A stretch of DNA of 63,780 nucleotides, the filler included, from Ministeria vibrans ATCC 50519 (taxonomy: Eukaryota; Protista; Filasterea): assembly GCA_943704425.1 (NCBI GenBank). It is 7 parts of 7 records of this genome, joined end to end, with 100 filler letters (N's around TTAATTAATTAA, not from the genome) between each part and the next. Parts side by side here need not be neighbours in the genome. Positions count along the whole stretch, not along the records: positions 1 to 28,885 come from CALSCP010001103.1; 6 more parts are not named here. One strand, 5' to 3'. Positions 5,902 to 39,450 of the stretch are shown here, one piece after another. The notes beneath the pieces were generated by a model. It ran no database searches. It was given only the letters and a program-made list of their open reading frames with translations, and was not told where the DNA came from. How positions within the stretch are numbered: position 1 is the stretch's first letter; every line of letters begins with the position of its first letter. The position numbers and the translations under genes were made by a program.

Positions 5902-5973
<72 letters not shown>

Positions 5974-8900
5974 CAGGTACGTCCTTATAACGCGGCGCAG
6001 GAGCAATCCAAGGCGACGGCAGCCAAGAAGAAGCGTGTGGGCGAGTATGAGGCGGCCAAGAGCGTGCGCCAGAAGAAGGCGGACGAGGAACGACGCAGCA
6101 AAGGGAAAGGGGCGGCGGCGGCTGACGCGGCCAGCGCCTCTTTCAAAGAGAAACTCGCCGCCAAAATCGTCAACAACGTTCAGATCCGCATTGGCGCCAT
6201 CCACATACGTTACGAGGACGCTCACACAGACACACGCGGAGCGCGCTACGCCGTGGGCGTCACACTGCGCCGTCTCGCCGTCCAGAGCGTCAACGGCAAG
6301 TGGGAGCCCGCCTTCATCGAGGGAAACCCTCCCATCACACAGAAGCTGTTGCAGCTTGACTCGCTCGCCGTCTACTGGGACGTTTCGCCATCGTTATCGC
6401 TCTTCTCGCCTCTAGCCGACCAGCTTGCCGCAATCTCCGCGTCCTCCTCCAAAACAGCCAAACGCGACGCAGAGGCCATCGTCGATCGCATCAACGACAA
6501 ACTCCGCCCCATGGTGGTCTCGCTCGACGATCTCGAACGCGGCTTTGTCGCTTCCCCACCCACATATATATTGGCTCCCGTCGTTGCCGAGGCTCGCCTC
6601 GTCCTCAATAGCCGTCCTGCCGAGAACCTCACTGTCCCTAAAGCGTCTGCCACTCTCGCCATGCGCGCCGTCAACGTCCAGCTTATGGCACCCCAGTACC
6701 GCGCTCTCACCCTCACCGCCGACACATTTGTCCGTCTCGGCCGTTGCGCTCGAACTCGACGCTGGAACCCACGCGCACAGCCTGCCCTGGGCTCGCGCGT
6801 CTCACCTCGCACTCACCCGCGTCTCTTCTGGCGCTACGCCATCGACGTCACCCTACACACCGTCCGCGAACGCCTTCACCGCGCCCTCTGGAGCACCGTC
6901 CTCGACAAGTGCCGTGCCCGTCGCGACTACACTGCCGTCTACGAACCGTACGCGCGCAGTGTTCTCCTCGCCCAAAAGACCCAAATCGCCGCGCGTCTCA
7001 AGGCTCTGGAGACCCTCGAGACCGCGTACTCCGCAGACGAAATCATCACCTTTCGCGAACTTGTCGACGATCGCCTTGCGCGCGACTCACACCTCATGGC
7101 ACAGCGTGACCAGCAGCACCACAAGGCCAGCAAGGGGTGGTTTTCGGGCATCACTAGCTGGTGGGGTGGAGGGAACTACACTGCAGAGGACGACGAGAGT
7201 AATGAGGAGGAGGGGGGCAGACGAGAAGGAGGGGGCAGCTCGGGGAACGATGACACTCTCATGCTGGGTCTTACTGCTGCGGAAATGGAAGAGCTGAAAC
7301 GGGGTGTAGGGGTCGATGATGATGGTGATGGTAGGGGGGGGAGTAGTGCGGCTGTCGCGGCGGCACGACGTGGACTCCCGATGGACTATGTCGGTATCAA
7401 GGTGCACGCCCACTTTGACGCCTTTCGTCTGTGTTTGCGCTCGGAACCATCAAATGCACGTGACTCGTCTACCGCGCATGATATTGTCGTGAGCACCATG
7501 TCGCATCTTGAGGTTGACGTGCGTCTGTTGCCCACTCCCGACTCGCTCCAGGCAGACGTCTCCTTGCGCGACCTCAGTGTCGTTGGTGCTACCAATGCCG
7601 CTGCCCAACACTCCGTGTCTCTTCTGCGTGCCGTTCAGTCACAAAGTGTTCCCAACCTACCCTCATTTACAGCAGGCTCTTCTCCAACGTCGCTCTCTCC
7701 CCCTCTTTTCTCCCTTGAGTTTGTCTCCAAACCACAGTATGTTGAGGCAGACTCGGCCGTCTCGTTGCGCCTGGAGCCTACCGAGATCACTGTCGACGCG
7801 CCCGTCCTCGCCGGTATTGTTGACTTCTTTCGCGTGCGTGAACGTGTCGCTCTCGACGAGCTTGCCGCGGCCGCTGCGTCTTCCTACGAAGGCCTCAAGG
7901 AGCAAACGTCGGCCGGTCTGGCCTACGCCGTCGAGACCCACAAGACCCTTTCACTGGACATTTGTCTTTCCGCGCCCCGCTTTCTCATTCCCGAACACGG
8001 CCGTCCACTCTCTCTTGACAGCGGTAGTAGTATTAGTAGTAGTAGTAGTGGTGGTGGTGGTGGTGGTGGTGGTGGTGCGCTCCTGGTGGCCGACCTGGGC
8101 TGTCTCACGATCAAGAGTGAGCTTGCGCCAAAGAATGCCGTTGAGCTTGCCGCCCAGGATTCAGCGCGGCTCAAAGAACTCGCCTACGACAAGTTCAACG
8201 TGCGTCTTCAGGACGTCCAGTTACTCCTTGTCCACGGTGAGCTCGCTCAAAACTTTGCATGGCGCTCTCTTCTTCTCAGTGGCGAGGAAGCAGCGGCAGC
8301 AGCAATAGCAACAGCACCAAGAGCAAAGGCAAAGACAGACCCAAATGGCACAGATGAGACCACCGCCGCCGCCACCACCGCTACACACGACACTTCACAT
8401 CATCTCTTGTGTCCATTTGCCATTGACGTGCGGGCCCAGCAGTGCATTCAGGCCGACAATCCCGAACTCGAGCGTCTCATTGTCTCGGGTGCCCTCCCTC
8501 GACTCGCCATTGCCATCTCCGACCGCCAAATTGGTCTTCTCATGACTCTCCTCGCCTCCCTCTCCAAAGCCTCAGCTGCCTTTGAAGACGCCCAAGCAAC
8601 GCCCGGCAATACGAATGATGCGGCGTCGACGCTCACTCAAACAGCAAAGAAGAGAGTTGCAGCCGCTAAGCAGCCCCCCGTCACTATTAGTAGAAGTACC
8701 ACTTCTGCCATGAATGTTCCCATCACAGGCAACGATGACGACAACGACGACGACGACGACGATGTCTTCTACTCGGCCTCGGAGGATCTTGAGGCGTCTG
8801 TTGCATCAGTCAACAAGGTGGCCCAGCAAGACGTGGACGCTGTCGACGAGTACGGTCTCACTGCCGCGCAGCGTCTCCTCTGTCGCAACGTCAAATTTCG

Positions 8901-11304
8901 CGGCACTTTTGTCATTGGCGAGCTCTCCATTGCGGTGAATCGGTCGCAGCTCACCGCAGATGTTCCCATGATGCTTTTGTCTCTGATGCACGTTCATGCG
9001 TCTGTGTGCCAACGCACCTTTGACACGAGCATCACGGCGGCCATTGCAGGCTTTGCCATCTATGACTGTGTCGTCAAGCACGCCATCATGCCCGACGGCT
9101 CGCGTCCCTTTGTGCTACTCGCTGGTAATATGAACCCTGCGGCGGACGACGAACACTTGTTGTCGGCCGAGCTCACGTTGGTCGATGCGGCGTCGCCTGA
9201 GCTGCCCAAGCGCCACAAGGGTGTCTCCACCGCCGTTGAGGTTTCACTGGGCGTGGTGCGTATTCAGGTGCGACAACGCACCATCACTCGGTTGCTTGAC
9301 TGGTCGTCGCATGAGCTGCCCAAGGCTCTGGCCCAAGGCAAGACGGACGACGATAACAACAACAACAACAACAACAACGATGGGGGTGACAGTGAGGCTC
9401 AATCGGTAGATGCTGCTGAGGCGGATGCGCAGGTCAAGAGCAAGGCAAACGGGGGTGAGACGCGCATTCGGGCGTCGTTTTCGCTGCTGCAGATTGTGCT
9501 GACAAATCGTCGACAGGACATTGCGCGCGTGTTGGTGAGCGATGTGAAAGCAACCGTGTCACAGACGCCCGAACGACTGCACGTTGCGACGACCCTAGGC
9601 AAGTTTGCTCTTGATGATGAGACACCACTCGGCAGGAAACACCACGCGCATGTGGTGAGCACCAGTGGCAACGAGGCCCTCAACATTGTGTTCACGCAGT
9701 GGGCGCACGGCGAGGACCATGCGTGTGATCTGGACGTGCGTCTTCACGCGAGTGGTCTCGTCATCACTTTTGTGCGCCGCTTCATTGACGAACTTGCCTT
9801 GTACGCGACGGCGTTCCAGAAGCGTTTAGAGCGCCTCGAGGGAGCCCGTGTGGCGGCTGTCGAGGCGGCGCGCGACGCTGCCAGCGACGCATCCAAAAGC
9901 GCCGCGCGTGTGCATCTTGACGTGCATATTAAGGCGCCGCTCATTGTGGTGCCCCGCAGTGCCAAGAGCCACGACTGTCTGCTCGTCGACTTGGGTATGA
10001 TCCGATTGGAGAATTCCTTCTTCAACGCACGCATGGGTCGCCCCGGTGCGCCTGTGTACACGGACAATCTGGTGGTCACTCTTACCGCTGTGCAACTTCA
10101 CGTCGAGACTCAATCGATCAAGTCATCGTCACTTCTTAACGGTCTTGACGTCACCGTGCGCATCAGCCGCCCGCTCTTTGACCCGCTTGTCGTTGGTATG
10201 CCCACCCACGACGCACTCACGGAAATCTCGGTTGGTCTTGGCAAGGTTGCGCTTGTGCTCACCCGCAATCACTACCACTTTCTCATGGCCATTAATGCCG
10301 AGAACATTGGGGCGCCCAGCGAGGGCGACAAGAAAGACAAGCAAAGCGCCGCTGGTGGAGGGAAAGAGACAGTTGCTCTTGAGGAGACTGTTCACGAGGA
10401 ACGTGACGCAAGTGGTTCTGAACCGGCTGAGAGTGCACCAATCGAAGCGGAAGCGAACGCGGATGAGAGCCAAGTTAAGAAGAAGAAAAAGAAGAAGAAG
10501 GCAACGGCCAAGGGTTCAGTGTCACAGTCGCAGTCATCTGCCATGCAACCGTACGCGACCATGCGCATTCGCGTTCAGCTTGACTCTATTGTCATTGAGC
10601 TGCGCGAGCACCTCTCGTCTCCTTTGACCAGTCTCTCGCTGCGACGACTGCACCTGAAGATGACAGGCATGTCGGACCAGGTCACCACCATGAGCATGAG
10701 TCTGTTTGCCATCGACATTGAGGACACGCGTCTTCAGTGTCAGAGTCGCTTTCGCAAGATCTTTTCCCACGCTTCGGGGGTTGCAGAGGTACCTGATACG
10801 GTCTCTTCTTTGGCCCCCGAGCCCACTGCGACCGCAGCCATGCCTGCTCTTCCGGCACACATGCAGCAACACATGCAACGGCAACCGTCGCTTGTGTCGA
10901 CTGCCAGCTCAGATGTGTTTCAGGATGCACTTGAGGACCTCGAAGAGGTGCCCACCGTCGCCGGCATGGGCTTTGAGGACAGCACTATCCTAGGCCTTCT
11001 GCCTTCGTCGACCGAGCGCTCACTTATTGTGCTGCGACTGGTGCAGTCTGCCGCCGACACCAATGTGTTTGTGTCCGTGTACAAGGTGCGCGCTGCATTT
11101 TATGGCGACTATCTTGGCGGTCTGTTAGCGTACATCACGCCCGATAAGCCTGACGACGACGAAGACGACGAAGAGGAAGAGGACGTGGGGACAGGAGATG
11201 CAGTGGTGCCCAAGGACGAGGAGACGCTGGAGCGGAAGGAGGAACGTGCAAAGCGTAAGAGGGAGAAGCGTGAACGCAAACGCAAAGAGCGCGCGGCACA
11301 AGAA

Positions 11305-11351
<47 letters not shown>

Positions 11352-14300
11352 CGCTGCTGAGCGAGAGTCACGAGCACGTAGCATGAGTCAAACCAGCACT
11401 AAGACAGAGGAGGGAGAGGAGGACGAGGAGGATGAGGATGACAATGGGAGCGCCTTCAAGTTGCAACTACTCGTCGAGGATCCCGAAGTGGTGCTATTGG
11501 CGAATCATCAGGACCGCAACACGCACGCACTGAGTGCCGCGCTAGATTTGAACTTGTCCCTTTCGCAGGCCCACTCGCAGACCAATCTGGACGTACAACT
11601 GTGCAACCTGCGTATGATCTCGTGCAATCTGGCGACGCGAGCCACTAGCGAGTCGCAAGTAATCAAGCCGTGCGACATCCACGCCTGGTTCCAGATGGTC
11701 CCTTCACCCATGTCCGGCGGCGTCGACGTCACCGACGTGATCATTCACATTGCCTACCAGGACATCAAGACAGCCCTGGTGATTCTCAATGCCATGTCCA
11801 AGGCAACAGCGCTGGCCAAAGAAGACGCCGGCAGCGATGGCGACGACAGCGAAGACGAAGATGCACTGGAGGCACGCACAGCTGCTCCATTGCGCCTTGG
11901 CTACTACGACTGTCCACAGCCACTCGACGATGACCATTGGTACTTGCGTGACGAGGACGAGGCGGAGGAGTTGTTGCGCAGGCAACGCGAAGAGATTGCT
12001 GCTGCGGCTGCCGAAGCAGAGGCCAAGGGCAAGGAGTTAGAGGGCACCAACGACTATGACAACAACAACAACGACGACGACGACAGCGACGCAGAGAATA
12101 ATCGCGAGCGACTGAAGAATGTCGGGTCTGCGTACATTACTGATCGACTTCGCGTGCAAATGGACCACGTGAGTGTGACGGTGGTCGACGACTGTGGCAA
12201 CCGAAATGTGCCTTTGTTGGCTCTCAACTGTAGTGTGGCACTCTCTGTGGCAGGGGACTCTGCGGACAAGGAGGGCATGAAGGTGTGTGGAATGTTCTCG
12301 ATGCGGGCGCTCACCTACAACGACATTGCGGGTGAGTGGGAGCCATTGATTGAGCCGGTGACAGGCGCACGCGGTGCCGTGGTGCCGTGGACCATTGGCA
12401 TTGATGCGCTGATGGTGCCCGAAGCAGACGAGTCGACGGCTGGCATGACCGTGAACATTGAGGCGGAGCACTGTCTCGAGGTGACGCTCACCCATCGCTC
12501 TCTGTCTAACATTCTCGAGGCACTGGCGGAGTGGCAGAAGGATCTGGCTGTGACACTGGAGCAGCGTGGCGAGAACAAGGGACGCGAGCGTTACGCGCCG
12601 TACGTGCTGCACAACGAGTGTGGCTGTGACTTGGTGCTACGTCTGCCCACTGCGAGTGTGGTCGAAGCCGAGGAGGACCAAGAGGTGACGCAATCGCGTG
12701 AGCTCGAACGCGACCTCGACGAAGAGGTGACCACTCGATTGCAGCGTGCCCCGTCGCAGCGATTCAACTTGCCCGTGTCGTTACTGCACAAAAAGGGAGG
12801 TGTCGGTGGTGGTGCAGAGACGAGCAAGGCAAAGGGCAAGTCACCGCGTGGTTGGACGAGTCACGCGCAGGCGCAGGCGCAGGCTTCGTCCAGCGAGCAG
12901 CGTTTTGTGAGTGTGCCTCTACCGCCGGGTGGTAGCAAACGATTTGTGATGAGTCTTGGTCAGGAGCGCACAGTTGATTGGCGCACCACCGGGCTTAGCA
13001 TGGGTCCGCGCTCGTCGCAGTCAACGGGTGCAGCGCAGTTTGACGACCAGGCAGCGCGAGCGATTGTGATGATCAATGGTTGGGAGGCGCTTTCGCCGCG
13101 GGTGCCACTGTCGCGCGTGGGTCACTACGTGCGTCATGTGCGACCGGCAGTGCAACCGGCACCGGACGAGCCGCGACGGTCGGACACGGTGCGCGTGTGT
13201 GTTGATGTGGAGCAACAGCACGGCACCAAGACAGTGACGGTGCGCAGCGGACTGCGCGTGTGCAATCGTACGTCTGTCCCCCTTGACGTTGCGTACGAGT
13301 TGTGCAAGGCAATGGGTGCGCGCCCCGAGTACCTCACGACAGTGGAGCCGGGCGAGACGTACGCCGTGCCGCTGCTGGTGGCCTACCACGCACGACTGCG
13401 TTTCCGTCCCGCCGGCTATGCCTACGCGTGGAGCAACGAGCGCATGAGCTGGGTCATGGCGGAAGTAAGTCCCACACGTAGCATCCGGTGTGAGAGTCTC
13501 ATTACCGAGGCGGACTTTGATACCCAGTCGCACGACGGAAGCTGGAACAGCAGCAGTGGTTCGCAAAGTGGCGATGAGGAGGAGGACAACAGCGATAGGG
13601 AAAGCGATGGGAGCGACGATGATTTTGTGCGAGAGGACGGTGTGCGTGTCACCTACCCGTTCATGTTGCGTCTGGCCGTGACTGCGGGTCGAATGGCACG
13701 CGTCACCCCCAATCTGCACCAGCCACATCCCGACCATGTGTACACGCTGTATGCGCCGCTCGTGCTGCACAATTGGCTTGCCGAGCCGATGCGCTTTGCA
13801 CTGGTGGATCCCAAGCGACACTGGCGCAAGGAGAGCCGCACAGCGGTCGAGGCGGGTGCACAGCTGCACGTGTACGAGTGTGCACTTGAGAATGGCATGG
13901 AATTCTCGGTGAAGTTGCAGGGTCACGAGTGGTCGACGGGGGTGCCGCTGGACACGGGCACGCAGCTGACGTGTGCCAAGACGGGCGAGGAGTCGACGCG
14001 TCGGTTGGCACTGAGCCTGCTGATGGACAACACGGCGACGGCCGGCTGTGCCTGGTCGCGCACGGTGCGAGTGTACGTGCCCTTTTGGATTGCCAACCGC
14101 ACGTCGCTGCCTCTGCTCTTCTGTGACCAGGCGCGTCCCGACGAGACACGTCGACAGGTGCTGCCACACACGGTGAGCATGTTTTCGTATCACACTGCTG
14201 GCAACCTTGCCTCGCGTGTATTCAGTGCGGTGACGAAGAATCGTGCGACAGTGCAGGTACGCGACAGTCGTCATTCGGAGCCGTTCCCGCTCGACACGGT

Positions 14301-17300
14301 AGGTCAGAATGGCACCATTTCCGTTGCCAAGGTACCCGTGTCCTTGCTTAATGCCGACGACACCCGTGGTAGCGACCTGAATTTGCTGTCGACACGCAGC
14401 GATCTGAATTTGCTGTCGACACGCAGCGACACGGTGGTGGACATGATGGTGCAGGGCCCGGGTGGGCTGGAGCGCGAGGACAGCAGTGTGACGCAGCGGA
14501 TGCTGCCGAGTGGTGGTCGTCAGCAGGCAGACCATCGTCGTCTGGTGACGCGCGAGCGCACCGACTGCGAATTGACTGTGAGTATTGCACTGTCATCGCA
14601 GGGACTCACCAAAGTGGTGACATTGGCGCCACGCTTCCTCCTGCGCAACCTTACGGGACGCACCATGCATGTGTGTGCAGCCGATGAGAAGTCCGCCAAG
14701 GGCTACAACGGCTGGCGCTTCCCGAGCGGCGCTAGCGAGCCTCTCTACACCAATATGCCGCTGCGTGTGCGCTACTCGGATACCGTGTGGACGCCGCCGA
14801 TTGTGGTCAATGTGCCTGCGAGCTTTTCGGCCAAGATGCGAGTGAAGCGGGAAGCGTTTGAGGTTGAGCAAAACCCCGCTGCTTCTGGTGGCGCGTCCAG
14901 TGCTGCTGGAGGTGGTGGTGCGCCCAAGCTCACGCGTGGCTCGAGCAGTCGCCGTCTCAAGGGCAAGGCCCCGCGCATTGGTAACATTGGCGAGGGTCGT
15001 GTGGTCGCAGTGGTGAGTGTGGAGGTGACCATGGACGGCGCGATGCTCATTGCGACGTTTCGACGCGACACGGGAGTTGAGCCGGTGCTCTTGGAGAACC
15101 GTTGTCGCAAGACGACCGTCTTTGTGACGCAGGCGGATGCGGAAAGACACGCCAATGCGCATGTGCACACCCTGGCGGCGCAACATGCGATGCCGTGGCT
15201 GCTTGACTCGCCGTGTGGCGAGCAGGGCATTTCGTGGTTTGTCGAGGGAACACGCATGCACCCACAGCGCGCGCCCTTGACAAGCTTTTTCATTGGCAAT
15301 TCGCATGGGGACGAGCAGCTGCATGCAGACGACGGCTCGACCATCTACGTGACGGTGTTTCCCGACGGCCCCAAATGCGTGGTGGTGTTCAGTGACGAGC
15401 CGAGTGTGCGCAATCGAATTGCGCGTCTGCTCTGCCAGACGTCGGACCAACAACGCGAACGACGCTCGACTGTTGCCAGTGAGATTGTGGCGACGCGCGC
15501 GTCGCTGCGCCTGGCCGGACTTGGCGTGAGCCTTGTCAGTGGTCTCGAAGAAATCGCCTATCTGCGCGTGAATCAGGTGGCCCTGCTGGCGACGCTCAGT
15601 GACAAGATGCAGCGACTGGCGCTCTCGGTGGACCGCATTCAGTTGGACAATCAACTGCGCAATGCGACATTTCCCGTGGCGTTTGCACCTGCGCCAGTGC
15701 CGTCGACGGCGACCGAGGCGGCGAAGCGTGTCAAATTTATTCAATTGATGGTGGTGAAGAGTGTGAGCGAGGCGAGCGACGCCTTCCCCATCGATGTGTA
15801 CCGGTACTTCTCGCTGATTCTGCAGCGGATGGAGGTCAAGCTGGACGACGTGCTGCTCATGCGACTACTTGGTTTTGTGGCAGTGGCGAGCACAGGTGCC
15901 GAGGAGGTGTCGCTGTCGGATGCGATTGCGACGGAGATGCGTGAGCTTGCGCAGCCCACCGATGTGAGTGCGAGTGTGGACACGACGGGCCGCCGTCTGT
16001 ACTTTGATATGTTCCAGTTGCACCCGATTGCCGTAAACATTAGTTTTACATTGAGTGGTGTGCAAGAGGACGACAGCAAAACAGCCGAAGGAGGCGCAGC
16101 GGGTGAGGGTGATGAGGATGGGGCGATGGCGGGGGTGGGAGGAGGAGGGGGTGTGAGCGGGGGTGGTGGGCAGGAGGAGTCTGCTGCACTGGTGCCGTTG
16201 CGTGTGCTACTGTCGGGAGTGGGTGGCTCGCTGACGAACATCCACGGGGCGCCGGTACACTTGAATGCGCTGTTGCTGGAGCGAGTTCTAGAGACGCAGC
16301 CGTCGTTGGTGTCCAAGGTGGTGGCGCACTACACGGAGCGGGTGCTTAAGGAGGTGTATAAGATTTTGGGGTCGGTGGACCTGCTAGGCAATCCGGTTGG
16401 GATTGCGATGAGTCTAGGCACGGGCGTGTCGGATCTGTTCTACGAGCCGTACAATGCAGTGATGGCGAACCCGCTGGACATTGGGGCGGGTCTGGCGCGA
16501 GGTGGGAAGAGTCTGGTGAGCAACACGGTGGGCGGAGTGACCGAGTCACTGTCGCGTGTAACGGGCAGTTTGAGCAAAGGAGTTGCTGTGCTCACGATGG
16601 ACTCCAAGTTTCAGCAGAAGCGAGGGCGCGAATTGGGGGCGACGACACACACACTGAAAGAGGGGGTGGCGCGAGGAGGCAAGCGGCTGGTGCACGGGTT
16701 TGCCGATGGGCTGACGGGGATCTTTATGAAGCCGCTGGAGGGCGCGCAAGAGAGCGGCGCGACAGGCTTCTTCAGCGGCATTGGCAAAGGGCTTGTGGGC
16801 GTTGTGGCCAAGCCCATTGGCGGCATTCTGGACTTGGCGTCGGGTACTTTTCAAGGGGTGGCGAGTTTGATGCGCGAGACGGGCGAGAACGCGCGGATCC
16901 GACCGCCGCGACACATTGTGAATGCTGGCGGGGCTAGCAACAGTGCCAGTGGCGTTGTGCGGGGGTATTCGCTGCACGAGGCTATTGGGGCGATGTTGCT
17001 GCATCAGATGGATGCGTATGAGCACGATGAGTATGTCGCGCATCTCGAGCTCAGTCCGGACAAGGATCCCAAGGCGAAGACGAAGAAGAAGCGCAGCAAC
17101 AAGTCGGTGACGGCACTGGACTCGGCGATGGCCGCCGCGATGAAGAAGAGGAAGGGAAAGACGCTGTGGGTGTACTTTACAATGCGACGCGTTCTTGTGC
17201 TTGACGCGGAGAAGCGCTCGCACATGGTGGTGGAGACGGACGTGCCGTTGGCGCATGTGCTGGACTCGTCGATTGTTGATGGTGGTGTGGCCATTCAGCT

Positions 17301-17439
17301 CAAACAGCCGGAGGAGATGGTGTCGTCTGGTAGTGGCGCAAGTGGTGTGCGTTCCAAGGGAAGCAAAAAGAGTCAGCTCAAGGAGACAGTCGTGTTGTTG
17401 CCCTGTGAAAGTACGCCCTATCAAGTGTTTTTTTATGTA

Positions 17440-17470
<31 letters not shown>

Positions 17471-17510
17471 TGCGTGTGTGTATGTGTATGTATGGATGTA
17501 TGCATGTGTA

Positions 17511-17553
<43 letters not shown>

Positions 17554-17646
17554 ACTCTTTGTTGGTTCTTTTCTGTAGATGAGATTGTGGGTGCTTGGTT
17601 GCAAGAAAAGTTGGAGGAGGCGAGGATGTATTTAGGGAATGTATAA
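5405..17646 (+). CDS. VPS13: VPS13 (A/C-like) bridge-like lipid transfer protein, 3 exons
   Basis: Chorein N-terminus MFESVVTGLLNKYLSKYVADLD...IPWKDL. Exons 5405-5686, 5977-17410 and 17579-17646. VAB-type repeats (WEPLIEP, YVPFWIANRTSLPL), C-terminal LGSVDLLGNPVG and ATG_C-like GFFSGIGKGLVGVVAKP. Confidence 0.95.
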
Positions 17647-17996: not shown

Positions 17997-20900
17997 ATGG
18001 ACAGCACTGCGGCGCTGGTGACTGTGGCTGCGGCACTCCCAGTGCTTCTGCTACTCTGGGCTGCTCTTCGACGGCGCCCTCGGCGTGCGCTGTCGTCCCG
18101 AGCAGCGCCTAAGCAGCGCTGGTCGATTTCGCCGCTTGTCATCGAGTCAAAAGAGTCGTCGCATCGCATTTCTCGTGCGCTTCTGCAGCGGGCGCAGACG
18201 TGTGCCTCGCGCGGGCGCTATTGGCAACGAGCAACGGTTGTGTCGCGAGCGGTAGACGCTGAACTTCGCGAGTTGATGCGTCTGATTTTGCGTGACTACT
18301 TTCATCGCGCCTGGCTCGACGATCTTGCCGTGCACACGGACGAGTTTGACGGCCACGTTCAGGTGGCCATGTGGGCACTCGTTGGGTCGCTCGGCGCGCG
18401 CCTGGGCAACGTGGATATCGTGCGCTTCCTGGGACTTGACGTGGTGTCGCACACTGTTGCGCATATGCGTGCCGTCCGCCGGCGCAACGAGGAGGGCACC
18501 CCCTTTCCCTTCCACCACTGTGTCGTGGACCGTCAGCTGGAGCGTCGCCACGTCCGGCTGCTCTCCGAGTCGTTGATTTTCGCTCTTGTGCCTGCGCCGC
18601 TCATCCTCTCAACACCCGTCCGCGCTCTCCTTGTCGATCTGCTCGCCAACAGCGTCATTCTCCCCGTGGTCGACAGCCTCTGCGACCCCCACCGAGTCAA
18701 CCAGATGATCTTACAGCACCTCCAGCCGGCTAAGAACACAGCGGCGGCCGCAGCTGCTGCTGCTGCCGCAGCCGCAAGCAATCCGGCCGACACACCCGAG
18801 ATGAGCAGCTCGACGGCTGGCGCTGAAAACTACGAGCAATTCCTACGACTCATTACGACAACGAGCGACGTTGAAGAACTCAAACAACTGCGCTACCAGA
18901 TCATAGCTGAAATCATGCAAGCGTCGCTCGTCGACAAAATTCAATCGTCGTCTGCGACCGTCGCCAGCCCAACGACAAACGGTAAGCGCAACAGCCAACA
19001 GTGCGGAGTTTTTTGAGTTCAATTGAGCACGTAGAGACCGGTGTGTTTACGTTTCTGAACCTGCGCGGGGCACGACTGAGCCAGCTCAAGGCACGCAACA
19101 TTCCACGGTACATGAACCAACTGCGCTTCACCAAGACACAGTGTGAGAAGCGCATTCGGGTGTTGGGGGGTCCAGACTACACAGTACGAATTTATCATAG
19201 ACTGAGAGATGATGATGAGTGAAGCGATTTGATTGAGTGGGTGTGTGTAGTGTGTGTGTGTGTGTGTGTGTGTGTGATTTTCATACTAAATTCCTTTACG
19301 CTTTTTTTTGTCTTTCCTCAGCCGAGTCGAGGGAATAACAACAGTAGCGACGGGACAGTTGGCACGAGTGTAACGCACCAACATGTGCTACAATTGGCTG
19401 AGATAGTTCACCATCCGCGGGCACTGACGTATTTTGCGGCGTTTGTGGCGCGCGATGGAGCTCAGCCACTGTTGACTCTGTGGCGCGCGTGTGACGCAGT
19501 GCGGAGGGTCTCTGCCGATGCCACTGTGGCGATGATTAGAGCGGTATGTGACTTCGTATTTGTGTTGCGATCTCTTCTCTTTGTGTTGGTCGGTGTGCGT
19601 GTGTGTGTGTGTGTGTTAATTTTTTTTGTGTGTGTAGGACACTAAGACTATTTATGACCGTTTTTTGGCAAATGACACTGAATATTTAACTGTCATTCCT
19701 CAGTCTATTCGGTAAGAAAAAATTGAAGAGACGCAAAAAAAACAGTCAAAAGAGATAATGTGTGCAAGTGAGTGAGAGTGCGAGGCTCACACACACACAT
19801 ACATACATACGTACATACGTACATACACACACACACACCGCTTATATTCAACAAGCTTCTATACTCTCTCTCTCACACACACACACACAATGCAATTAAT
19901 ATTGGGGGCTGTTTCAGGCACGGACTGAGTGAATTTGCCAATGAGGAAGAGTTACGAGCAGGAGAGCGCGAGAGCGACGTGAAGCGGCGGGCCAAGGATT
20001 TGTTTGCACGGGCTCAGGCTTATGTGTTCCGCCATTTGGAGACGGAGTATTACCAGCGGTTTGTGTTGAGCGATGCGTACTTTGCGTTTGTGTGTGAGGA
20101 AGAGAAGCGCAGTGAGATGGAACGGGAGAAGAGTAGTAAGAGTGCAGTCAAAGAGGAGGAAGAAGAAGAAGACGCAGAAGAAGTGAAGACGCAGGAGAGA
20201 GAGCGACAAGTGAGCGCAACGAGTGTTTCAACAGCAGAAGAGGAAGAAGAGGAGGACGAGGACGAAGTGGAAGGAAGAGACGAAAAGGAAGGAGGAGAAG
20301 GGGATAATGTGTCGGTGGTGTCTGTGACGGGTGTGTCGAGCCGGATGCAGGAGATATCAGATATTCTTGAGACCAAACAGACTGAACTGTATCAGGTGAG
20401 ACATTCACATTGACGCATTTTCTCCTCTGTATTTATTCACATTGACGCATTCTCTCCCTCTATTTATTCACATTGATGCATTTTCTCCTCTCTATTTATT
20501 CACATTGATGCATTTTCTCCTCTCTATTTTGGTTCTTTCCTCTCTTTCTATCACCTGTTTCTTCCTTCCTTCTTTCTCTCCCTCACTTTGTTTCGTTTTT
20601 TCTTCCTTCTTTTTTTCGTCTATCACCTTCTTTCATTCGTTTTCTCTCTTTTACCTTGATGCTTGATGTGTGCGCTTTTAGCTGCAAATGGCCATTGCCG
20701 ACTACTTCCATGCACCGCCTGAGCTTACACAGGCGATTCGGGTACTGGAGAGTGGCATTGAGCAACTAAAGCAGGAGAAGCTAGAGTTGGCGCACCACGC
20801 AGAGATTACGGAACAGTGGTGGAGTGGTGTGGACCGTGTGCGGACCTTTGTTCACTCGGTGGATTGGGTGGGTGAGCCCAATACGTCTCAGGTACTAATG

Positions 20901-22169
20901 GCATCTGTCTTCAATCGCCTCTTAACTCTTTTCATTTCCCCTCGCTGTGTGTTGCTAGGTGGCTGTGTTTTCAATTATGGTATCAATGGAGGGCGCATCG
21001 GGTGCGGGTTGGGTTGTGTTGCGTCGCTATGCAGACTTTGTGGCACTACATGCGACACTGCGCGAGTACAGCAGTGAGTTGCGTCGACAGCGCTTGCCTA
21101 ATGCACCGCAGAAATCTAATGCGGAGCGTGTGAGAGTTGCGCTGGAGAAGTACCTGAGCGATAGTGTGTTGGCCGATGAGCAAGTGAGGGTCAGTGAGGA
21201 GGTGTACCTGTTTCTTACACCTCGAGTGGCTGCCGCACCGGGAAAGACCCAACCGCAGCAGCAACAGCAGCACGGAAAGAAGAGGAAAAAGGGTAAAGAA
21301 AGCCTCAAGCACGAGACACAAGAAGCAAGTGACGAGAGCAAAGGGTATGCGCGCTCACCGAGTGTGGTTGTGTCGTCTTTGCGTCGTGCATCGCTTCTTG
21401 ACGGAACGTCAAGCAACAGCGCCAACAATAGCAGTAGTAGTACAATGATGAGTGGTGCAAATGGGGCTGGTGCAACAACACAACAACACCATGAACACAC
21501 TGAGTTTGTCTACGACGATGGCGACGCAGTGGTTTTGACTGCAGATGATGAATTCTCTGGCGGCGATCAGCTCGAGCAGCTTGCGGAACCCCTCTTCAAA
21601 CTGGTTGCTGAGCTATTTGAGTTGCAGGGTGTCTTTCGCTGGCTGCGTCGCCAGCTTATCGTCTTTGTTCAGATTACTTTTGGCGGCACAATCAATCGGA
21701 ACATTATTGATTCCTGTCAGTGGTTTGGTACGATTAAGACTACACAATACTTATAGGTATGGACTCTGAGTAAATGTGTTTTATAGCTGCGACACCACAG
21801 CTGGTGTTCTATTTGCAGTCACTGCGGGGGCTGTTGGATCGAGGGGAGGAGGAGGAGGAGGAGGAGGAGGGAGGAGAAGAAGAGGAGGAGGAAGGGAGAA
21901 GGGATGAGAAACGGGAGAGTGGGGAGGATGAAGAGGGAGAGGAAAGGGAGATTGCTGAGCAGGCGCGAGTGCGGGTGGAGGCGCACAGTCGCCTGGTGGA
22001 AAACATTCCGGTGGTGTTGCAGTCGGTGCTGGGGCGGGAGAACACGCGGAAGGGGGCGGAGAAACTGTTTGATATGCTGCAAGATGAGATGCTTAATCGC
22101 CATCTTGTGTACTCGATGCTTGATTTGGTCTTGCTACATGTGGTGCCCGAGTTGGAGGACCAGCAGTGA
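17997..22169 (+). CDS. SNX25: Sorting nexin of the PXA-RGS-PX-Nexin_C class (SNX25-like), ~8 exons
   Basis: N-terminal TM; PXA (LILRDYFHRAW, LCDPHRVNQ); SNX25-like LKQLRYQIIAEIMQA and RYMNQLRFTKTQCEKRIRVLGGP; RGS (YYQRFVLSDAY); PX (WVVLRRYADFVALH); Nexin_C (LNRHLVYSMLDLVL...PEL). Confidence 0.85.
20402..20530. repeat. Intronic minisatellite, ~30-bp unit x4
   Basis: Tandem ATTCACATTGA(C/T)GCATT(T/C)TCTCCTCT...TATTT copies immediately after the donor at 20396. Confidence 0.85.
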
Positions 22170-23855: not shown

Positions 23856-24093
23856 CGCAGGGGGGGGGGGNNNNNNNNNNGGGGGGGGGGTAGCAATGGA
23901 AGATAATCAAATAATGATCAAGACTAAAATATTATTATTATAATATTATTCAATTGTCATCAGTTATTTCTCGCTCGCTATGTGAACTCACAATAAAGGA
24001 TAAACATACGCTCACAGTAAACATACAACTACAATGTGGTTTTATTAAGATAGGTGAAAAGACAACAAACAAACAAAAATAACAGTATAATGA

Positions 24094-27000
24094 TCAGTCG
24101 GTGGTTGAGGTGTGCGCAGAGTGGCTGTGCGTGCGCGGCGAACGCACTTTGGAGGGTGTCCCGACGGGCGGAAGCACACTGATGGCAAGCGGATCGTCGG
24201 CGGCGTCGTCGAGCCAGCGGCTTTGAGCGCGGGGCAGAGGGCCCTGGTCCATGTCGAAGGAGTCGAGGTCCAGCGATGAGTCGTGGAGGTGTGACTCGCT
24301 GGACGCGAGACGCCGTAGACGCATGGCTGGAGACTCGCGCGGTGACGCACTCTCAAAGTGCAGCAGCTGCCCGCGCGGGTTGCTGAACAGGGACTCGTAC
24401 GAGACGGTTCCGTCCTGCGCGGACGACACTGCAAATTCCTCGTTGCTCTTCAACAGTCCCTCACTGCTCCCGTCCGGATCATCGCCAAACATCGATTCGC
24501 TGCTCAGGTGCCCTGACGACGCCTGCTCGTGCAGCTCGCGCTCCCGCTTGAACACGGCAACGTCCGCCATCATCATGTGCTCGCTGGGCGTCGCTCCAAT
24601 CTTTCGAGCGCCCCGCACAAGCTTGGGCGAGCTGTAGTCGTCAAAGGGCTGCTCACCCTCGTCAAACGAGTCAACATGAATGTCCAGAAGCTCTTGCAGT
24701 CGCAAAGACATAGACTTGCTCGACCCATGACTGCTATACTGGTTGTGCTGGGTGTGGAACTCGGGCTCGGACGACGACGTGATCGTAGCGTCGTTCAGAA
24801 TGAGGTGCTGCTCCCCACGCAGCGCCAGACTGGTGCTCGCGCGCTGCGACGTCGATTCGGTGGGCTTGCTCGCCAAGTTCTTGCTGTCGCTGCTACCACC
24901 GCTCTTGCGTGGATGCCAGCCGCGCCAAGACGGCCGCTCGCGACGGCGGCGCCGCCGCCAGTAGTCGCGCCAGTGGAGCACAAGTTGCTTGCGGATGCGG
25001 CGGGTGAGGCAGTAGGCGCAGAAGAGCCAGACGCCTTGAAGACCATTGAGAATGGCAAAAAGAAGCCAGAGCACGCGCGTGTCGGACGCAAGCGCAATAT
25101 AGGCAACCACCCAGGTGGCGCCGGTGGTCACGCCAAAGACAATGGTGGCGCGCAGGTGGCGGATGCGGTCGCTCGTGCCCGTCTTGGTCAGCTGCAGCCG
25201 CACAACGCGCGACTGGTGGAACACGCGGATACACATGCCCAGCGCAATAAGGTTGCACGCAAGTAGCAGCGCTACGGGAACCAAGAAGGCGTAGCGCAGT
25301 GCAGGTCCTGGTGCAAACCAACAGACCGTCTCGCTCGTCGTGCTCCCAACCAGCTGGTCCACTGCAATCACAATGCCCATCGGCACCAGCGGCACCAGCC
25401 ACACCGTCACTGACACCGCCAGTGTCCATCGCACCGACTTGGCCAGTCGCCCATGCGCAATTGAACGCCAGAGCAACAGTGCAATGACAAACATCCACAA
25501 AAATAGTGTCATCAGACTGTAGTAGAGTGCGACCTTGACCCCTTCGCACACCGATGGCCGATCCACTGCATCGCTTCCGCCCAGAAACAGCGCATTTACC
25601 AGAATGAGAGCAACGCTCAGCTGCATCACCATAATCATGGGCGTCGTGCGCAGCTTGGGAAGCAACAGGAAGACCACCACAAGCGCAACACACGCAACAA
25701 TCGACAGCGCCCCACACACTTGCGTAGTAATCTCAATCGCGCGTGTCAGCCCGTCGCTTCTCCGCTCGTAGTACACAGCCACATCGCTAAAGTGCCAAAT
25801 GTAGCCGGTGATAATACGTTCCGTCAGCATCGCCTGGTTCTCGGCTCGCTCCCACGCGCGGCCCTGCGCCCGATAATACAGCACAAAGTTGTACCCGTCA
25901 CGCACCGCACTCGCGTCCAGCTGCACCGTCAGCAGCACCGCCTTGAGGAAGGCCGTCGCGGGCCCCAGAACGTACACGGCCGACGCGCGGTACGGCAAAG
26001 GCTCTTCCGTAAGAGGCGGTGCAAGGGATGACGCGCGTCCAATGACCACGTCCAAGGACGCTGAGAGTGCGTCCGACGGAAACTCAAGCGACACATCACC
26101 GCCTTGCAGTGTTCCACCTAGTGTATCCACAGTCTTGGTTCCCAACTCAATAATCATGAGCACCTCGTCGCACAGCTCGCCCGTCCACAGACCCACACAG
26201 GCACACGTGTAACCGTTGACGTCGTCCACGCAGATGCCGTCGTTGACGCACGGCGATGACGCACACTCGTCCACATTCTCGAGGCACGTCGCGCCTACAA
26301 AGCCGGTCGCACACACACAGTCGAAGACCAGGCCATGTCCTTGGCTACACGTGCCGCCATTGGCACACGGCGTTGACGCGCATGCGTCAATGAATTGCTC
26401 GCAAAGGGTGCCGGTCCAGCCCGCGCTACAGCCACAGGTGAATCCATCGAGAGCATCGCGACAGAGACCGCCGTTGCGACAGGGCGACGACACGCACTCG
26501 TTTACGTCCACCTCGCACAGCGAGCCGGTGTGCGACTGAGGACACTCGCAGCGAAACGACGCCACTTCGTCAAGGCAAGTAGCACCGTTGAGACACGGCT
26601 TGGATGCGCATTCGTTGTCGTTCACGTCGCACACATCGCCACTCCAGCCTACACTGCACACGCACGTGTACCCCGCCGCCCCGTCGGTGCAGTGTCCTCC
26701 ATTGGCACACGGCAAAGACGCACACTCGTCGATGATCGCGTTGCAGAGCACGCCAGTGAAGCCATCGTGGCAAGCACAGGTAAACCCATCGGCATGGTCC
26801 GTACACGAGCCACCTTGCTGACACGGCAAACTCGCACACTCGTTCATCATCTCGTCGCATTGCACGCCCGTGAAGCCACTGCGACAGTCGCACTCAAAAC
26901 TATTCACCTTGTCCACGCAGACACCGCCATTGTGGCATGGCACACTCAAGCACTCGTCAATGTCCACCTCACACACCGATCCCGTGTAGCCCGACAAGCA

Positions 27001-28885
27001 CACGCAGTCAAAAGCACCCGCTCTATCCATGCAAGTTGCTCCGTTGCGGCACGGCACAGACGCACACTCATCAATCGCTTGCTCGCACAGCATCCCGGTC
27101 CATCCCGCAACACACGCACAGCGAAAGCCAGTCGGAAGCCCCTCGCACACTCCGCCATTCTGGCACGGCGACGAATGACAGTGCACTAGACTCAGACACG
27201 TCGCGCCAGAGAATCCGGCCGGACACTCGCATGTAAACCCATCCACTGCGTCCGTACAACTGCCGCCATTGGCACACGGTGCTGAAGCGCACTCGTCAAT
27301 GTCCACACTACACAGTGTGCCCGTCCATCCCGCAGAGCAATCGCATCCAAACCCATTGACGGCATCCACGCACACGCCATGAGCCCCACACGGCTGCGAC
27401 GCGCACTCGTTGATGTCAGCGCCGCACAACAACCCCGTGTATCCAGCGGCGCACACGCACGTGTAAGCATCTACATCGTCAACGCACGAGGCGCCATGGC
27501 GACACGGCCCAGACGCACACTCGTCAATAGCCTGTTCACAATGTGTACCCGTCCAGCCGGCGACGCATGAACACTCAAAGCCAGTCGCAAGACTCGTGCA
27601 TCCCGCACCATTCTGGCAGGGCGACGAGTCACACTGTATCAACGTCAAGCAAGTCGCTCCCGAGAACCCCGCGGCGCACACGCACACAAACCCGTCCACA
27701 TCATTGCGACAACTGCCGCCATGCGCACACGGCGTGGAGGCACACTCGTCAATGTCCACACTGCACAATGCGCCAGTCCATCCTGCCGAGCACACACATT
27801 CAAAATGGTTCACAGCGTCCACGCAGGCACCGTGCGTGCCACACGGCTGCGAAGCGCACTCGTTGATATCAACATCGCACATGAGGCCTGTGTAGCCAGC
27901 GGTACAGACACACGAAAATGTATCTACACTATCCATGCAGGTTGCTCCGTTGCGGCAAGGCGCAGACGCACACTCATCAATCGCTTGTTCACACTGCGCA
28001 CCTGTCCAGCCGGCAACACACGAGCATTCAAATCCGCTCAAAAGGCTTGCACATGCACCGCCATTCTGACAGGGAGACGAGTGGCAGTGTACAAATCCAA
28101 GACAGCGAGCACCCGAGAATCCGGCCGGACACTCGCATGTAAACCCATCCACTGCGTCCGTACAACTGCCGCCATTGGCACACGGTGCTGAAGCGCATTC
28201 GTCAATGTCCACACTACACAGTGTGCCCGTCCATCCCGCAGAGCAATCGCATCCAAACCCATTGACGGCATCCACGCACACGCCATGAGCCCCACACGGC
28301 TGCGACGCGCACTCGTTCATATCCACCTCGCACAGCAACCCCGTGTATCCAGCGGCGCACACGCACGTGTAAGCATCTACATCGTCAACGCACGAGGCGC
28401 CATGGCGACACGGCCCAGACGCACACTCGTCAATAGCCTGTTCACAATGTGTACCCGTCCAGCCGGCGACGCATGAACACTCAAAGCCAGTCGCAAGACT
28501 CGTGCATCCCGCACCATTCTGGCAGGGCGACGAGTCACACTGTATCAACGTCAAACAAGTCGCTCCCGAGAACCCCGCGGCGCACACGCACACAAACCCG
28601 TCGACATCATTGCGACAACTGCCGCCATGCGCACACGGCGTGGAGGCACACTCGTCAATGTCCACACTGCACAATGCGCCAGTCCATCCTGCCGAGCACA
28701 CACATTCAAAATGGTTCACAGCGTCCACGCAGACACCGTGCGTGCCACACGGCTGCGAAGCGCACTCGTCAATGTTCACCTCACACACCGATCCCGTGTA
28801 GCCCGACAAGCACACGCAGTCAAAAGCACCCGCTCTATCCATGCAAGTTGCTCCGTTGCGGCACGGCACAGACGCACACTCATCA
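24094..28885 (-). CDS. Adhesion-type 7TM receptor: at least 24 EGF repeats, ZU5-like domain with HFS motif, family-B-like 7TM, Ser-rich tail (5'-truncated at gap)
   Basis: Uninterrupted ORF with 24 countable EGF units, many of calcium-binding type (DIDEC/DVNEC). Then GGTLQGGDVSLEFPSDAL...IWHFSDVAVY, followed by seven hydrophobic helices with adhesion/secretin-class marks (C at the top of TM3, LFLWM, ECL2 CW, AFLVPVALL, FAILNGLQGVWLF). Confidence 0.88.
26960..28885. repeat. Coding tandem array with 453/906/1812-bp periodicity (4-, 8- and 16-EGF blocks)
   Basis: Near-identical sequence at a 906-bp offset (27596 vs 28502) and at an 1812-bp offset (EGF1 vs EGF17). Every fourth EGF is a shorter non-calcium type. 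Confidence 0.9.
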
Positions 28886-36693: not shown

Positions 36694-39450
36694 GTACTAC
36701 TTCCGCCCTTCTGTGACACGCGCCGAGGTTCCAGGCCACAACGATGTTGATGTGACTTTTGGCTGCGGGACAACCATTCACGAAGCGACCTGTAAGCGAG
36801 AGAGATGAGGGAGAAAAGGCAAAGTGAGAGGACAAAGAAACAAATTAGTCATAGAGAGGAGAAAGAACAAAGCAATAGAGAGAGAGAGGAGGGAGGGAGA
36901 AAGAAAACCTAGTGATAGAGAGAGACTAGGGAGAGGGGGAGGGAGGGAAAAAGAAACAAAGTGATAGAGAGAGAAACGAAGTGATAGGGAGAGAAACTAA
37001 GTGATAGAGAGTGATGAAGTGATTAGAAAAAACCCAGAGTGATAGAGAGAGTTATACGACTGACAAAAATGATTGATGCGAAACTTCTTGCTAAATTTAT
37101 CTGTATAGCGTTTCTGGAGCGCATTCCGCACACGGGCCCGATCATCATTGAGTCGCAACAACAGGCTCCTGTGCTCAGGCTCAAAGGTGCCATTTTCATG
37201 CGTGAGGCGCGGCGTGCCATCAAAGGTTTCTTCAAGATGATCTACATCACCTTCCTTGCGCCCGAGATTATGCCCGTCGATCCCGAAGACCAAGTTCCCG
37301 GTGCGCACTCATTGTTGAACTCAATCCTCCTTCAAACTTCAATTTTCTTACGTGTGCTTTGTCTGTTTTTTTTAGCAAGTGGCTATGCTTGGCAGTCCAT
37401 CACAGGCGTTGGCGATGTTTCCCTTGGCGGAGTGCTCTCCATTGGCGGTCACGGCACCTTTGTGCCTTACACCAATGCTCCCGACCCTCGTTACGCCGGA
37501 AGGTACATTGCCAACCACAAAGACACGCACACACACAAAAAGACCCTCGCACACCAACACAAAGAACACACCACCACAAGGAGACACACTCACTCACTCA
37601 CTCACTCACACATACACACACCTTATCTTCTGCTATCCATTCTACATTGTAGTCTCTCCAATCAGATTGTGGGCTTTACCGCTGTCGTCACGGATCCCAA
37701 CTCAGCTACACCCGACGACTACATTGTCAAGTACTTTCATCGCTCCGACCCCGACTCGGCCGCCTTCCTCGTTCATCTCGGCCGTGCCTTTATTCTCGAC
37801 GTCACCATGCGTTGCCGTCAGAACTACTACTTGCGCGAAAAGACCCACATTCAGCCCATTGGTTCTCTCATTGGTTCTGAGCGTCTTCGTGACGGCCAAG
37901 TACAATATCCCTTCTCCGTTTCTGACTCATCACACTCACACCCGCTTGCAAACATTTTTGTGCATTTTTACAGTCGTCACTGCAAACACTGGTGGAGAAC
38001 CACGGTCGTTTTGAGTTGCTCTGGTTCCCGTCCGAGGAAGAAGCGTGGATGAAGACGTGGGCTGAGGAGACGACAGTCATGAAGCCGGCTGTTATCGAGC
38101 CGTACACCCATGGTAACTTCTTCTTTTGGCTGCTCAACCGCATGAGCAACGCCCTCAATCGACTTGCTCGCAACTGGTTTGCCGAGCGCCCTTCCATTTC
38201 CTACTCTTTTGCCAGTGTTGCCATGGCTATGGCCCGTGGTATCAAGAACTCTGGCGAGACGTTTGGGTACGCAGAAGAATGATGAAACGACAACTACAAC
38301 CCACTTCCCCATAGTCTCTCACGTGACCAGCTTCTCTACGTGTCCCCTTTTACACTGCGTGTGAGCTGCATTGGCGGCGGTGTTCTTGCGCGTCGCAGTG
38401 AAATCCAGGACATTGTCCGTCGCTTTGTTGACATTGTTGACAAACACCGCAGAAAGGCTGAATTAGTAAGTTTTATATTTTATGTTATTTCTGCGCCAGG
38501 CTTCTTTCTTTTGGTCCTTTTGAGCTCACAATATTCACCGCTCTGGTTTAGGTCAACCGTTACCCTATTTTTGGTCCTGTGGAAGTGCGCGTTGTGGGTG
38601 TTGATGACGTATGAATAAGTCTGTCCATGCGTTGCCCTGTCCCTCCCCTGACTCTGTTTTGTTTCTCTATTCTTTGTTACTTTGTTTCTCTATCACTTTC
38701 TCTTTATTACTTTGTTTCTCTGTTTTTCTCTCTGCCTCTCTCTCTCTCTCTCTCTCTCTTTTACACACACGCACTCTCATATCTGTGTCTTTATTTTACT
38801 TGGTGCAGCCTAATGATCTTGGAATCCGCAATGCCACTCTGCCATACCTGTCTCCATCCGTGCCCATTGAAGGACGCGAAGAGTTTGACGTGATTGTCTA
38901 TGTTGATGCTCTTACCATTCCGTCGTGGACGGATGCCAAGACCGAGTCGCGCACGCCCGAGAGCCACGGGTAAACAACGGTAGGTACGTTCGACTCGACT
39001 AATTTCTTCTTGTAGCGTCTTGGCCGACATTGAACTGGATCTGATGCGCGAGTGGGGCGATCTTGCCGAGCTTCCAGAACACCGCAACCGACTTCGTCCC
39101 GAGTGGAGCAAAGGTACGACAGGCGTCTCGAGAATGCACCAGATTGACTTTTGAGCGCGACTCATTTTGATTCATCTGTCGTTGATTTTCTTTTTTGCTG
39201 CTAAGGTTGGGGTTACTCTAATGTGACTGGTGCGTGGCGTAACCGCCGCTACCTCGAGCGCCTTATCCCCAATGCCTTTCCTCATCTCGACGACGCACGC
39301 AACATCTTCGAGAAGTACGACAAGCATAATCTGTTTCGATCGGCCCTCTCCCACCGCATTTTTGGCCGTGGCAATGGCTATAAGATTGGCGGCAACGACG
39401 GCGTCGACTTTTACGGGCGCGAAGCTATCGACTACTCGGAAATGCGCTGA
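36694..39450 (+). CDS. Class II (VAO-family) cholesterol oxidase-like flavoprotein, multi-exon, 5'-truncated at gap
   Basis: GDVSLGGVLSIGGHGT, LSNQIVGFTAVV, FLVHLGRAFILDVTM, GRFELLWFP, YPIFGPVEVRVVGVDD, YLSPSVP and RPEWSK|GWGY occur in the order recalled for bacterial covalent-FAD cholesterol oxidases. Confidence 0.8.

Follow-up and report, generated by a model that had tools for sequence, protein, structure and literature searches.

The question addressed here is whether a domain other than GAIN can occupy the place directly before the first transmembrane helix (TM1) of an adhesion G protein-coupled receptor (GPCR). It is raised by a receptor gene of the filasterean Ministeria vibrans ATCC 50519 (assembly GCA_943704425.1), which lies in a stretch of 63,780 nucleotides composed of seven joined parts of this genome and referred to here as the window. 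Adhesion GPCRs are described with GAIN immediately before the seven-transmembrane (7TM) region (PMC9539791), and a survey of GPCRs in close relatives of animals treats GAIN-7TM as the central module of adhesion GPCRs in holozoans, places its origin in stem holozoans and leaves ZU5 unmentioned (PMC12716839). In the gene analysed here, EGF repeats are followed by a ZU5 domain ending in His-Phe-Ser (HFS) and then by the 7TM core, an architecture that we regard as almost certain.

Domain layout and integrity of the receptor gene

The receptor is encoded on the minus strand by an intron-free open reading frame at 24094..28869, comprising 1591 codons plus the stop codon at 24094-24096. Its 5' end is truncated by the contig edge at 28885, and residue numbering starts at 28869. 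A reading of 24094-26160 on the plus strand was rejected, since it yields stops only. Residues 1-904 (26158..28869, minus strand, as are all domains of the receptor) constitute an array of 23 EGF-like or calcium-binding EGF repeats (Pfam EGF E 1e-150, 23 stretches). They are followed by the cysteine-free, extracellular ZU5 domain directly before TM1 (residues ~908-1035, 25765..26148) and by a 7tm_2 core of the secretin/adhesion class (residues ~1045-1280, 25030..25737), which matches Pfam PF00002 at E 3.4e-24 over profile positions 4-248 of 250 and is also recovered in the genome scan. The Ser-rich cytoplasmic tail of ~310 residues (24097..25029) matches no Pfam family at E up to 10. The nearest Atlas clusters to the receptor are all adhesion GPCRs with 7tm_2 and GPS.

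The ~145 residues that separate the final EGF cysteine (~residue 900) from the first one in TM1 are free of cysteine, and ~130 of them make up the folded domain; the preliminary description of this locus, which had put the cysteine-free segment at ~125 residues, is borne out in this respect. Contigs from two other sequencing runs span 24063-26994 (a contig of 2956 nt) and 24651-26994 with zero differences, and because these independent assemblies are colinear with the window, the contiguity of EGF repeats, ZU5 and 7TM is confirmed. In addition, a marine polyA RNA-Seq library contains exact pieces of 25484-25712 and 25978-26220. The EGF-coding DNA has a period of 453 nt and forms a tandem array (window 26950-28885), in which the 906-nt units of 27380-27979 and 28286-28885 share 93% identity. 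Such similarity suggests that the array was duplicated internally in recent times, and the tandem repeats are the likely cause of the contig break at 28885.

Identity of the juxtamembrane domain

On its own, the domain scores 16.7 bits against Pfam ZU5 (PF00791; cut-off 21, E 0.009, profile positions 3-95 of 97), and when this single sequence was compared with the PDB, nothing beyond a chance match to neogenin (E 0.86) came up. With the domain as query, an exhaustive HMMER run over 1.84 billion representative proteins returned 14 hits at E < 1e-3, the best at 3e-9. These are mostly bacterial secreted or lipoprotein-like proteins, along with one eukaryote-like protein in which ZU5 is followed by a transmembrane (TM) helix and a kinase, and a 7TM region is absent from all 14. 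Ten of the hits were scanned; each of them matches Pfam ZU5, six above the cut-off, and most terminate in HFS or a close variant. A profile (A1) built from the window domain, ten paralogous domains and four bacterial hits found ankyrin ZU5 chains at E 2.7e-12 to 1e-8 among all PDB sequences, followed by the ZU5 domains of ZO-1 and UNC5B, and did not match GAIN in this search. Likewise, no Pfam GPS match was found in the ~145 residues before TM1 of the window receptor.

The AlphaFold2 model computed on A1 is an all-beta sandwich without helices (pLDDT 87.6, pTM 0.81), for which the preliminary description had called for a comparison with both ZU5 and GAIN structures. This comparison was carried out with Foldseek and VIA-align and places ZU5 first. 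Ankyrin ZU5 domains match at Foldseek E 2e-6 and weaker (TM-score 0.5-0.7) and at VIA-align Z 11.7-13.3, with an rmsd of 2.4-3.0 Å over 121-139 residues, the best match reaching Z 13.3 at 3.0 Å over 139 residues. ZU5 of ZO-1 (Foldseek E 3.6e-3, Z 9.1), UNC5B (E 1.6e-4, Z 7.7) and the FIIND of NLRP1 (E 4.4e-2, Z 7.7) are also recovered, and GAIN domains score E 8e-3 to 0.3 and Z 5.9-9.7. The hallmarks of GAIN, namely the cysteine pairs and tryptophan of GPS and a helical subdomain A, do not fit a segment that is cysteine-free and a model that is free of helices. An hhalign comparison of the ZU5 family with the GAIN domains of the same receptor family was not significant (probability 1.2%, E 0.045), and for this reason no sequence-level homology between ZU5 and GAIN is claimed from these data; the best alignment nonetheless sets HFS in register with His-Leu-Thr (HLT) of GAIN. 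Sequence profile and modelled fold identify the juxtamembrane domain as ZU5, to which GAIN is structurally related at a greater distance.

The ZU5-like module with HF|S before TM1 that had been proposed from the sequence hence stands, in terms of profile (E 2.7e-12), fold (Z up to 13.3) and motif (present in five of five paralogs). Its characterization as an unrelated fold and a convergent design, on the other hand, is not supported as it was stated: ZU5, GPS and Nup98 autoproteolytic domains were assigned to one superfamily by Zhang et al. 2012 (PMC3482391), the same argument is attributed to Liao et al. 2014 in the passages of PMC10084454 and PMC11697300 that cite it, and GAIN structures are the next-best matches of the model (Z 6-10).

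The HFS motif and its distance from the membrane

The predicted autoproteolytic site, His1026-Phe1027-Ser1028, is encoded at 25786..25794 on the minus strand, as previously located, though without indication of the strand; the bond predicted to be cut is Phe|Ser. In the model, the triplet corresponds to residues 130-132 and forms the turn between the last two strands (123-130 and 133-140). The predicted post-cleavage N-terminus (25738..25788, minus strand) would comprise the last ZU5 strand, SDVAVYYE, and a short linker to TM1, and marks a candidate tethered-agonist position.

Conservation of the triplet was followed through the genome (29.7 Mb, 2860 contigs), which contains 25 matches to the window ZU5 domain. 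HFS is invariant in the window receptor and its four paralogs. Moreover, 18 of the 23 readable ZU5-like domains of the genome terminate in HFS, two in HLT and three in Ser-Phe-Ser (SFS), and HFS also ends most of the bacterial homologues found. This conservation is far beyond chance. HLT and SFS are the cleavage motifs of GAIN and NLRP1, respectively. We know of no HFS in the non-catalytic ZU5 domains of the ankyrin type.

The Pfam 7tm_2 match begins 17 residues after the +1 Ser, in agreement with the 15-20 residues originally estimated. When the five ZU5 receptors are aligned with 35 canonical ones, exactly 25 residues separate the Ser at +1 of HF|S from a TM1 landmark in every ZU5 receptor. 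In 28 of the canonical genes, the Thr at +1 of HL|T, HM|T or HF|T is 25-32 residues away from this landmark, the remaining seven being without a His-x-Thr triplet. The strand itself is less telling. SDVAVY had been likened to the tethered-agonist pattern T-x-F-A-V-L, yet this resemblance is largely that of a generic last strand of the ZU5/GAIN sandwich and recurs in similar form in single-pass ZU5 proteins. Position +2 is acidic and position +7 is Tyr in four of the five ZU5 receptors, features that single-pass ZU5 proteins rarely show.

A family of five ZU5-7TM genes with a displaced GAIN domain

Four further genes of the same genome (L012, L013, L014 and L015) share with the window gene the succession of EGF repeats, ZU5(HFS) and 7tm_2, at 36-47% identity to the window over ZU5 plus 7TM and 27-46% over the domain. 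In a maximum-likelihood tree of 7TM cores, the five ZU5 genes and the canonical gene L043 form a clade with 100/100 support and a long stem, and a single origin of the ZU5 arrangement may be compatible with this tree. L043 (G000:C2221:4645-5718), a canonical GPS-7TM gene, nests inside the clade with a support of 93/83 for its position; judging from the sequences, it would either have lost the EGF-ZU5 cassette secondarily or be a gene of ancestral type that the tree misplaces.

All four complete paralogs additionally possess a Pfam GPS with C-x-C-N-H-L-T (E ~1e-13), located 727-1663 nt upstream of the 7tm_2 match. It belongs to a full GAIN domain at 230-540 residues from TM1, with EGF repeats and ZU5 in between. 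This position breaks the usual rule that GAIN stands directly before the first TM helix. Complete GAIN domains with an intact HL|T are found at L012:2355-3389, L013:3302-4336, L014:2290-3324, L015:2015-3049 and, on contig C883, L024:4228-5262. A profile of the GAIN regions of this receptor family (A2) matches the GAIN of ADGRL3 at E 7e-16. In the model of the family GAIN (pLDDT 76.5), six helices precede a beta sandwich, and Foldseek aligns this model with the GAIN domains of BAI3, BAI2, latrophilin (CL1) and CELSR1 at E 1e-12 to 5e-10 over 315-335 columns.

The N-terminus of the window gene itself lies off the contig. A frame on contig C883 encodes Receptor-L-like repeats, GAIN/GPS and seven EGF repeats, and the final 143 nt of this frame align in the same orientation with window 28286-28428 at 89% identity. 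There, a scaffold gap of 7 N (L024:6114-6120; G000:C883:35613-35619) interrupts the EGF-coding frame and is followed by AT-rich sequence. The scaffold join at this gap may be wrong, with contig C1103, which carries the window gene, belonging there, and C883 probably holds the missing N-terminal half of the window gene.

Since GAIN is retained in the complete paralogs, ZU5 replaces it solely as the membrane-proximal module, and the sequences and models indicate that GAIN is kept in a displaced position. The replacement originally proposed consequently holds for the site next to the membrane and fails for the receptor family as a whole, in which GAIN is preserved further out in four of four complete paralogs and, on C883, in the probable N-terminal half of the window gene.

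Canonical adhesion GPCRs and single-pass ZU5 receptors of the same genome

The genome contains at least 58 GPS motifs and ~48 7tm_2 genes, and in ~40 cases GPS ends 31-133 nt before the 7tm_2 match. The seven canonical-type genes without a His-x-Thr triplet (e.g. L027, L034, L035 and L049) may, by their sequence, be non-cleaving. In two further genes, a ZU5-like domain occupies a more distal part of the ectodomain, ahead of a canonical GPS-7TM pair (G000:C894:3722-4282 with GPS at 1340-1459, and G000:C2362:40396-40860 with GPS at 38857-38964).

In most of the other cases, the ZU5-like domain leads via a Gly/Ser linker into a single TM helix with a stretch of Arg behind it, and hence belongs to a type-I receptor. 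An extracellular ZU5 ending in HFS, SFS or HLT occurs in at least 13 such receptors; the single-pass loci comprise L016, L009, L010, L011, L008 and L060-L072 (e.g. G000:C2066:16652-17110, C879:9741-10265 and C1664:69277-69798). At least one of these receptors has a Tyr-kinase-like domain, and several share the cytoplasmic motif MINTAEIEPRQLEFL. From these sequences, Ministeria vibrans seems to employ a self-cleaving ZU5 next to the membrane as a general module of its receptors.

Proposed mechanism and competing explanations

Taken as a whole, the explanation that we favour, with moderate rather than high confidence, is that of an adhesion GPCR with a self-cleaving, membrane-proximal ZU5 domain. 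In the first step, ZU5 would cut itself at Phe|Ser through an N-to-O acyl shift, as in PIDD1, UNC5CL and the FIIND of NLRP1 and CARD8. The two fragments would then stay joined non-covalently through the embedded last strand, until a pull on the EGF stalk extracts this strand. Finally, the extracted strand would act as a tethered agonist on the 7TM core, or at least the ectodomain would be released. The chemistry of self-cleaving ZU5 and FIIND domains (PIDD1, UNC5CL, NLRP1) is known (PMC3482391, PMC10084454). Cleavage at Phe|Ser is predicted and appears probable to us, and tethered agonism by the released strand is a candidate role that we put at somewhat less than an even chance. A bolder formulation, doubtful in our judgement, would have the last ZU5 strand, freed by HF|S autoproteolysis, serve as a true class-B 7TM agonist; any member of the ZU5/GAIN/Nup98 superfamily at 25 residues before TM1 would then suffice, and the receptor would comprise two serial cleavage sites, a distal one in GAIN and a proximal one in ZU5, that could be broken under force. 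As for the origin of the arrangement, the simplest and most likely course would be that a canonical adhesion GPCR received an EGF-ZU5 cassette between its GAIN and TM1, with the single-pass receptors, among which the cassette is common in this genome, as the source.

Several observations weigh against the proposed self-cleaving, agonist-bearing receptor. The same ZU5 module precedes single TM helices that offer no agonist pocket, and the strand following HFS closely resembles that of the single-pass proteins, so that nothing in it yet marks an agonist; the acidic residue at +2 and Tyr at +7 are the only hints in this direction, and the five members of the family are not independent of each other. 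Well-studied ZU5 domains of animals (ankyrin, UNC5, ZO-1) are non-catalytic binding modules, and the window protein on its own stays under the Pfam ZU5 cut-off. It could also be the retained GAIN, further out, that performs the functional cleavage. In addition, the assignment of C883 to the window gene is based on 143 nt of 89% identity inside a repeat family, and the RNA support consists of assembled contigs, which demonstrate presence and colinearity, not the level of expression.

Among the competing explanations, the one that survives best holds that ZU5 is cleaved only for the sake of a sheddable or force-sensitive ectodomain, like the SEA domains of mucins and some receptors, while the strand has no agonist role; signalling, if it occurs, would then require a bound ligand or removal of the ectodomain. 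It draws on the at least 13 type-I receptors in which ZU5(HFS) precedes a single helix and no 7TM pocket is available, and on the likeness of the post-cleavage strands in the 7TM and single-pass classes. Indeed, because receptors without such a pocket carry the module, its general role in this organism cannot be agonism. This explanation is opposed by the exact spacing of 25 residues to TM1 in all five ZU5-7TM receptors, which falls within the canonical tethered-agonist range, while the single-pass proteins have long Gly/Ser linkers instead, and for the 7TM receptors we rate shedding alone as rather unlikely.

Still less likely in our view is a ZU5 domain that remains uncleaved and functions as a rigid spacer or as a module for binding ligands or partners, as in ankyrin, UNC5 and ZO-1, which would leave the distal GAIN as the sole autoproteolytic module. 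The best structural matches are indeed non-catalytic ankyrin ZU5 domains, and the distal GAIN keeps its complete C-x-C-N-H-L-T. Against this stands the strict maintenance of HFS in the paralogs, in the distant single-pass relatives and in the bacterial homologues, which is hard to explain otherwise and hence favours catalysis, as well as the nature of the observed variants, HLT and SFS being the motifs at which GAIN and NLRP1 are cleaved. The weakest alternative, a subdomain B of GAIN reduced by the loss of cysteines, is very improbable: the model does match GAIN structures (Z 5.9-9.7, Foldseek E 8e-3 to 0.3) and HFS aligns with HLT of the family's GAIN in the best hhalign alignment, but this alignment is not significant, ZU5 structures clearly outscore GAIN (ankyrin Z 11.7-13.3), the profile matches ZU5 at E 1e-12 and GAIN not at all, a Pfam GPS match is missing from the segment, and the nearest sequence relatives exceed the Pfam ZU5 cut-off.

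Relation to known receptors and autoproteolytic domains

With canonical adhesion GPCRs such as ADGRL3, ADGRE5/CD97 and ADGRB3, the receptor shares the 7tm_2 core, a long adhesive ectodomain, a beta sandwich of the autoproteolysis type before TM1, a His-hydrophobic-Ser/Thr triplet in its last turn and the same distance from this triplet to TM1. It differs from them in that the proximal sandwich is a ZU5 domain of ~130 residues devoid of the helical subdomain A and of the cysteines and tryptophans of GPS, and in that GAIN is located 230-540 residues outward, behind EGF repeats. ADGRF1 and ADGRF5 likewise contain two self-cleaving modules per ectodomain, with SEA in the distal and GAIN in the membrane-proximal position; here the order differs, as GAIN is distal and ZU5 proximal.

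The ZU5 domains of PIDD1 and UNC5CL (HF|S) and the FIIND of NLRP1 and CARD8 (SF|S) exhibit the same fold and the same placement of the triplet before the last strand, and some Ministeria copies even share SFS. These domains are, on the other hand, cytoplasmic, are followed by UPA and death-fold domains and take part in the assembly of signalling complexes, whereas the ZU5 of the window is extracellular and is followed by a 7TM core, or by a single TM helix in its relatives. To our knowledge, eukaryotic ZU5 domains have so far been described only inside the cell. Surface ZU5 was previously reported from bacteria, namely from surface proteins and polymorphic toxins (PMC3482391). These bacterial domains are the closest sequence relatives (E down to 3e-9) and agree with the present one in being extracellular and in ending with HFS; they occupy N-terminal regions of secreted or lipoprotein-like proteins that also contain modules such as Big_2, RHS and FN3, and are not found in a juxtamembrane position of a eukaryotic receptor.

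The full-text literature searched for ZU5 together with adhesion GPCR, tethered agonist or filasterean terms contained no description of a ZU5-7TM receptor, and within this scope the architecture appears to be new, in line with the preliminary description, which knew of no account of it. No other protein combining ZU5 with 7tm_2 was found in the Atlas, in metagenome contigs (A3 profile) or by hmmsearch with A3 (proteins of 222-705 residues), collections that have known blind spots and that do not include this genome's own proteins; the absence elsewhere is weak evidence, given that relatives of Ministeria vibrans are poorly sampled. A word-indexed search with residues 900-1300 gave only seven distant animal adhesion GPCRs. 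Hydra hits that seemed to be without GPS according to Pfam were rejected as further cases, as C-x-C-N-H-L-T is present next to their TM1.

Genomic surroundings

At lower window coordinates, a VPS13 frame of 4050 codons (5494-17646, plus strand) adjoins a region at 17997-21756 (plus strand) with PXA, RGS and PX pieces in three frames, which looks like one intron-containing gene for an SNX13-like sorting nexin. Runs of 10 N occur inside the contig at 4002-4011 and 23871-23880, the second ~215 nt downstream of the receptor stop codon. Both genes mark the organism as a eukaryote, and a search with VPS13 matched oyster, fungus and fish proteins at 21-24% identity. The genome as such has few introns, includes T-box and integrin-beta genes, which indicate a unicellular holozoan, and its sequences recur in seawater and algae-associated samples.

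Implications

The logic of adhesion GPCRs is itself known; what is new here is that another member of their autoproteolytic superfamily takes the GAIN position. The family constitutes a natural swap, in which ZU5 has entered this position with the spacing preserved and GAIN has been pushed far from the membrane. Current models of adhesion-GPCR activation rest on the GAIN-7TM pairing, and the arrangement therefore bears on whether GAIN is required for tethered agonism or a cleavable strand with the correct spacing suffices, and also on the role of a GAIN domain that does not adjoin a membrane. Beyond the individual receptors, it bears on how ectodomains are rebuilt by cassette insertion in close relatives of animals, and it reveals a eukaryote in which an extracellular ZU5 next to the membrane is common among receptors. 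If the ZU5 strand were indeed the agonist, activation of adhesion GPCRs would not need GAIN as such.

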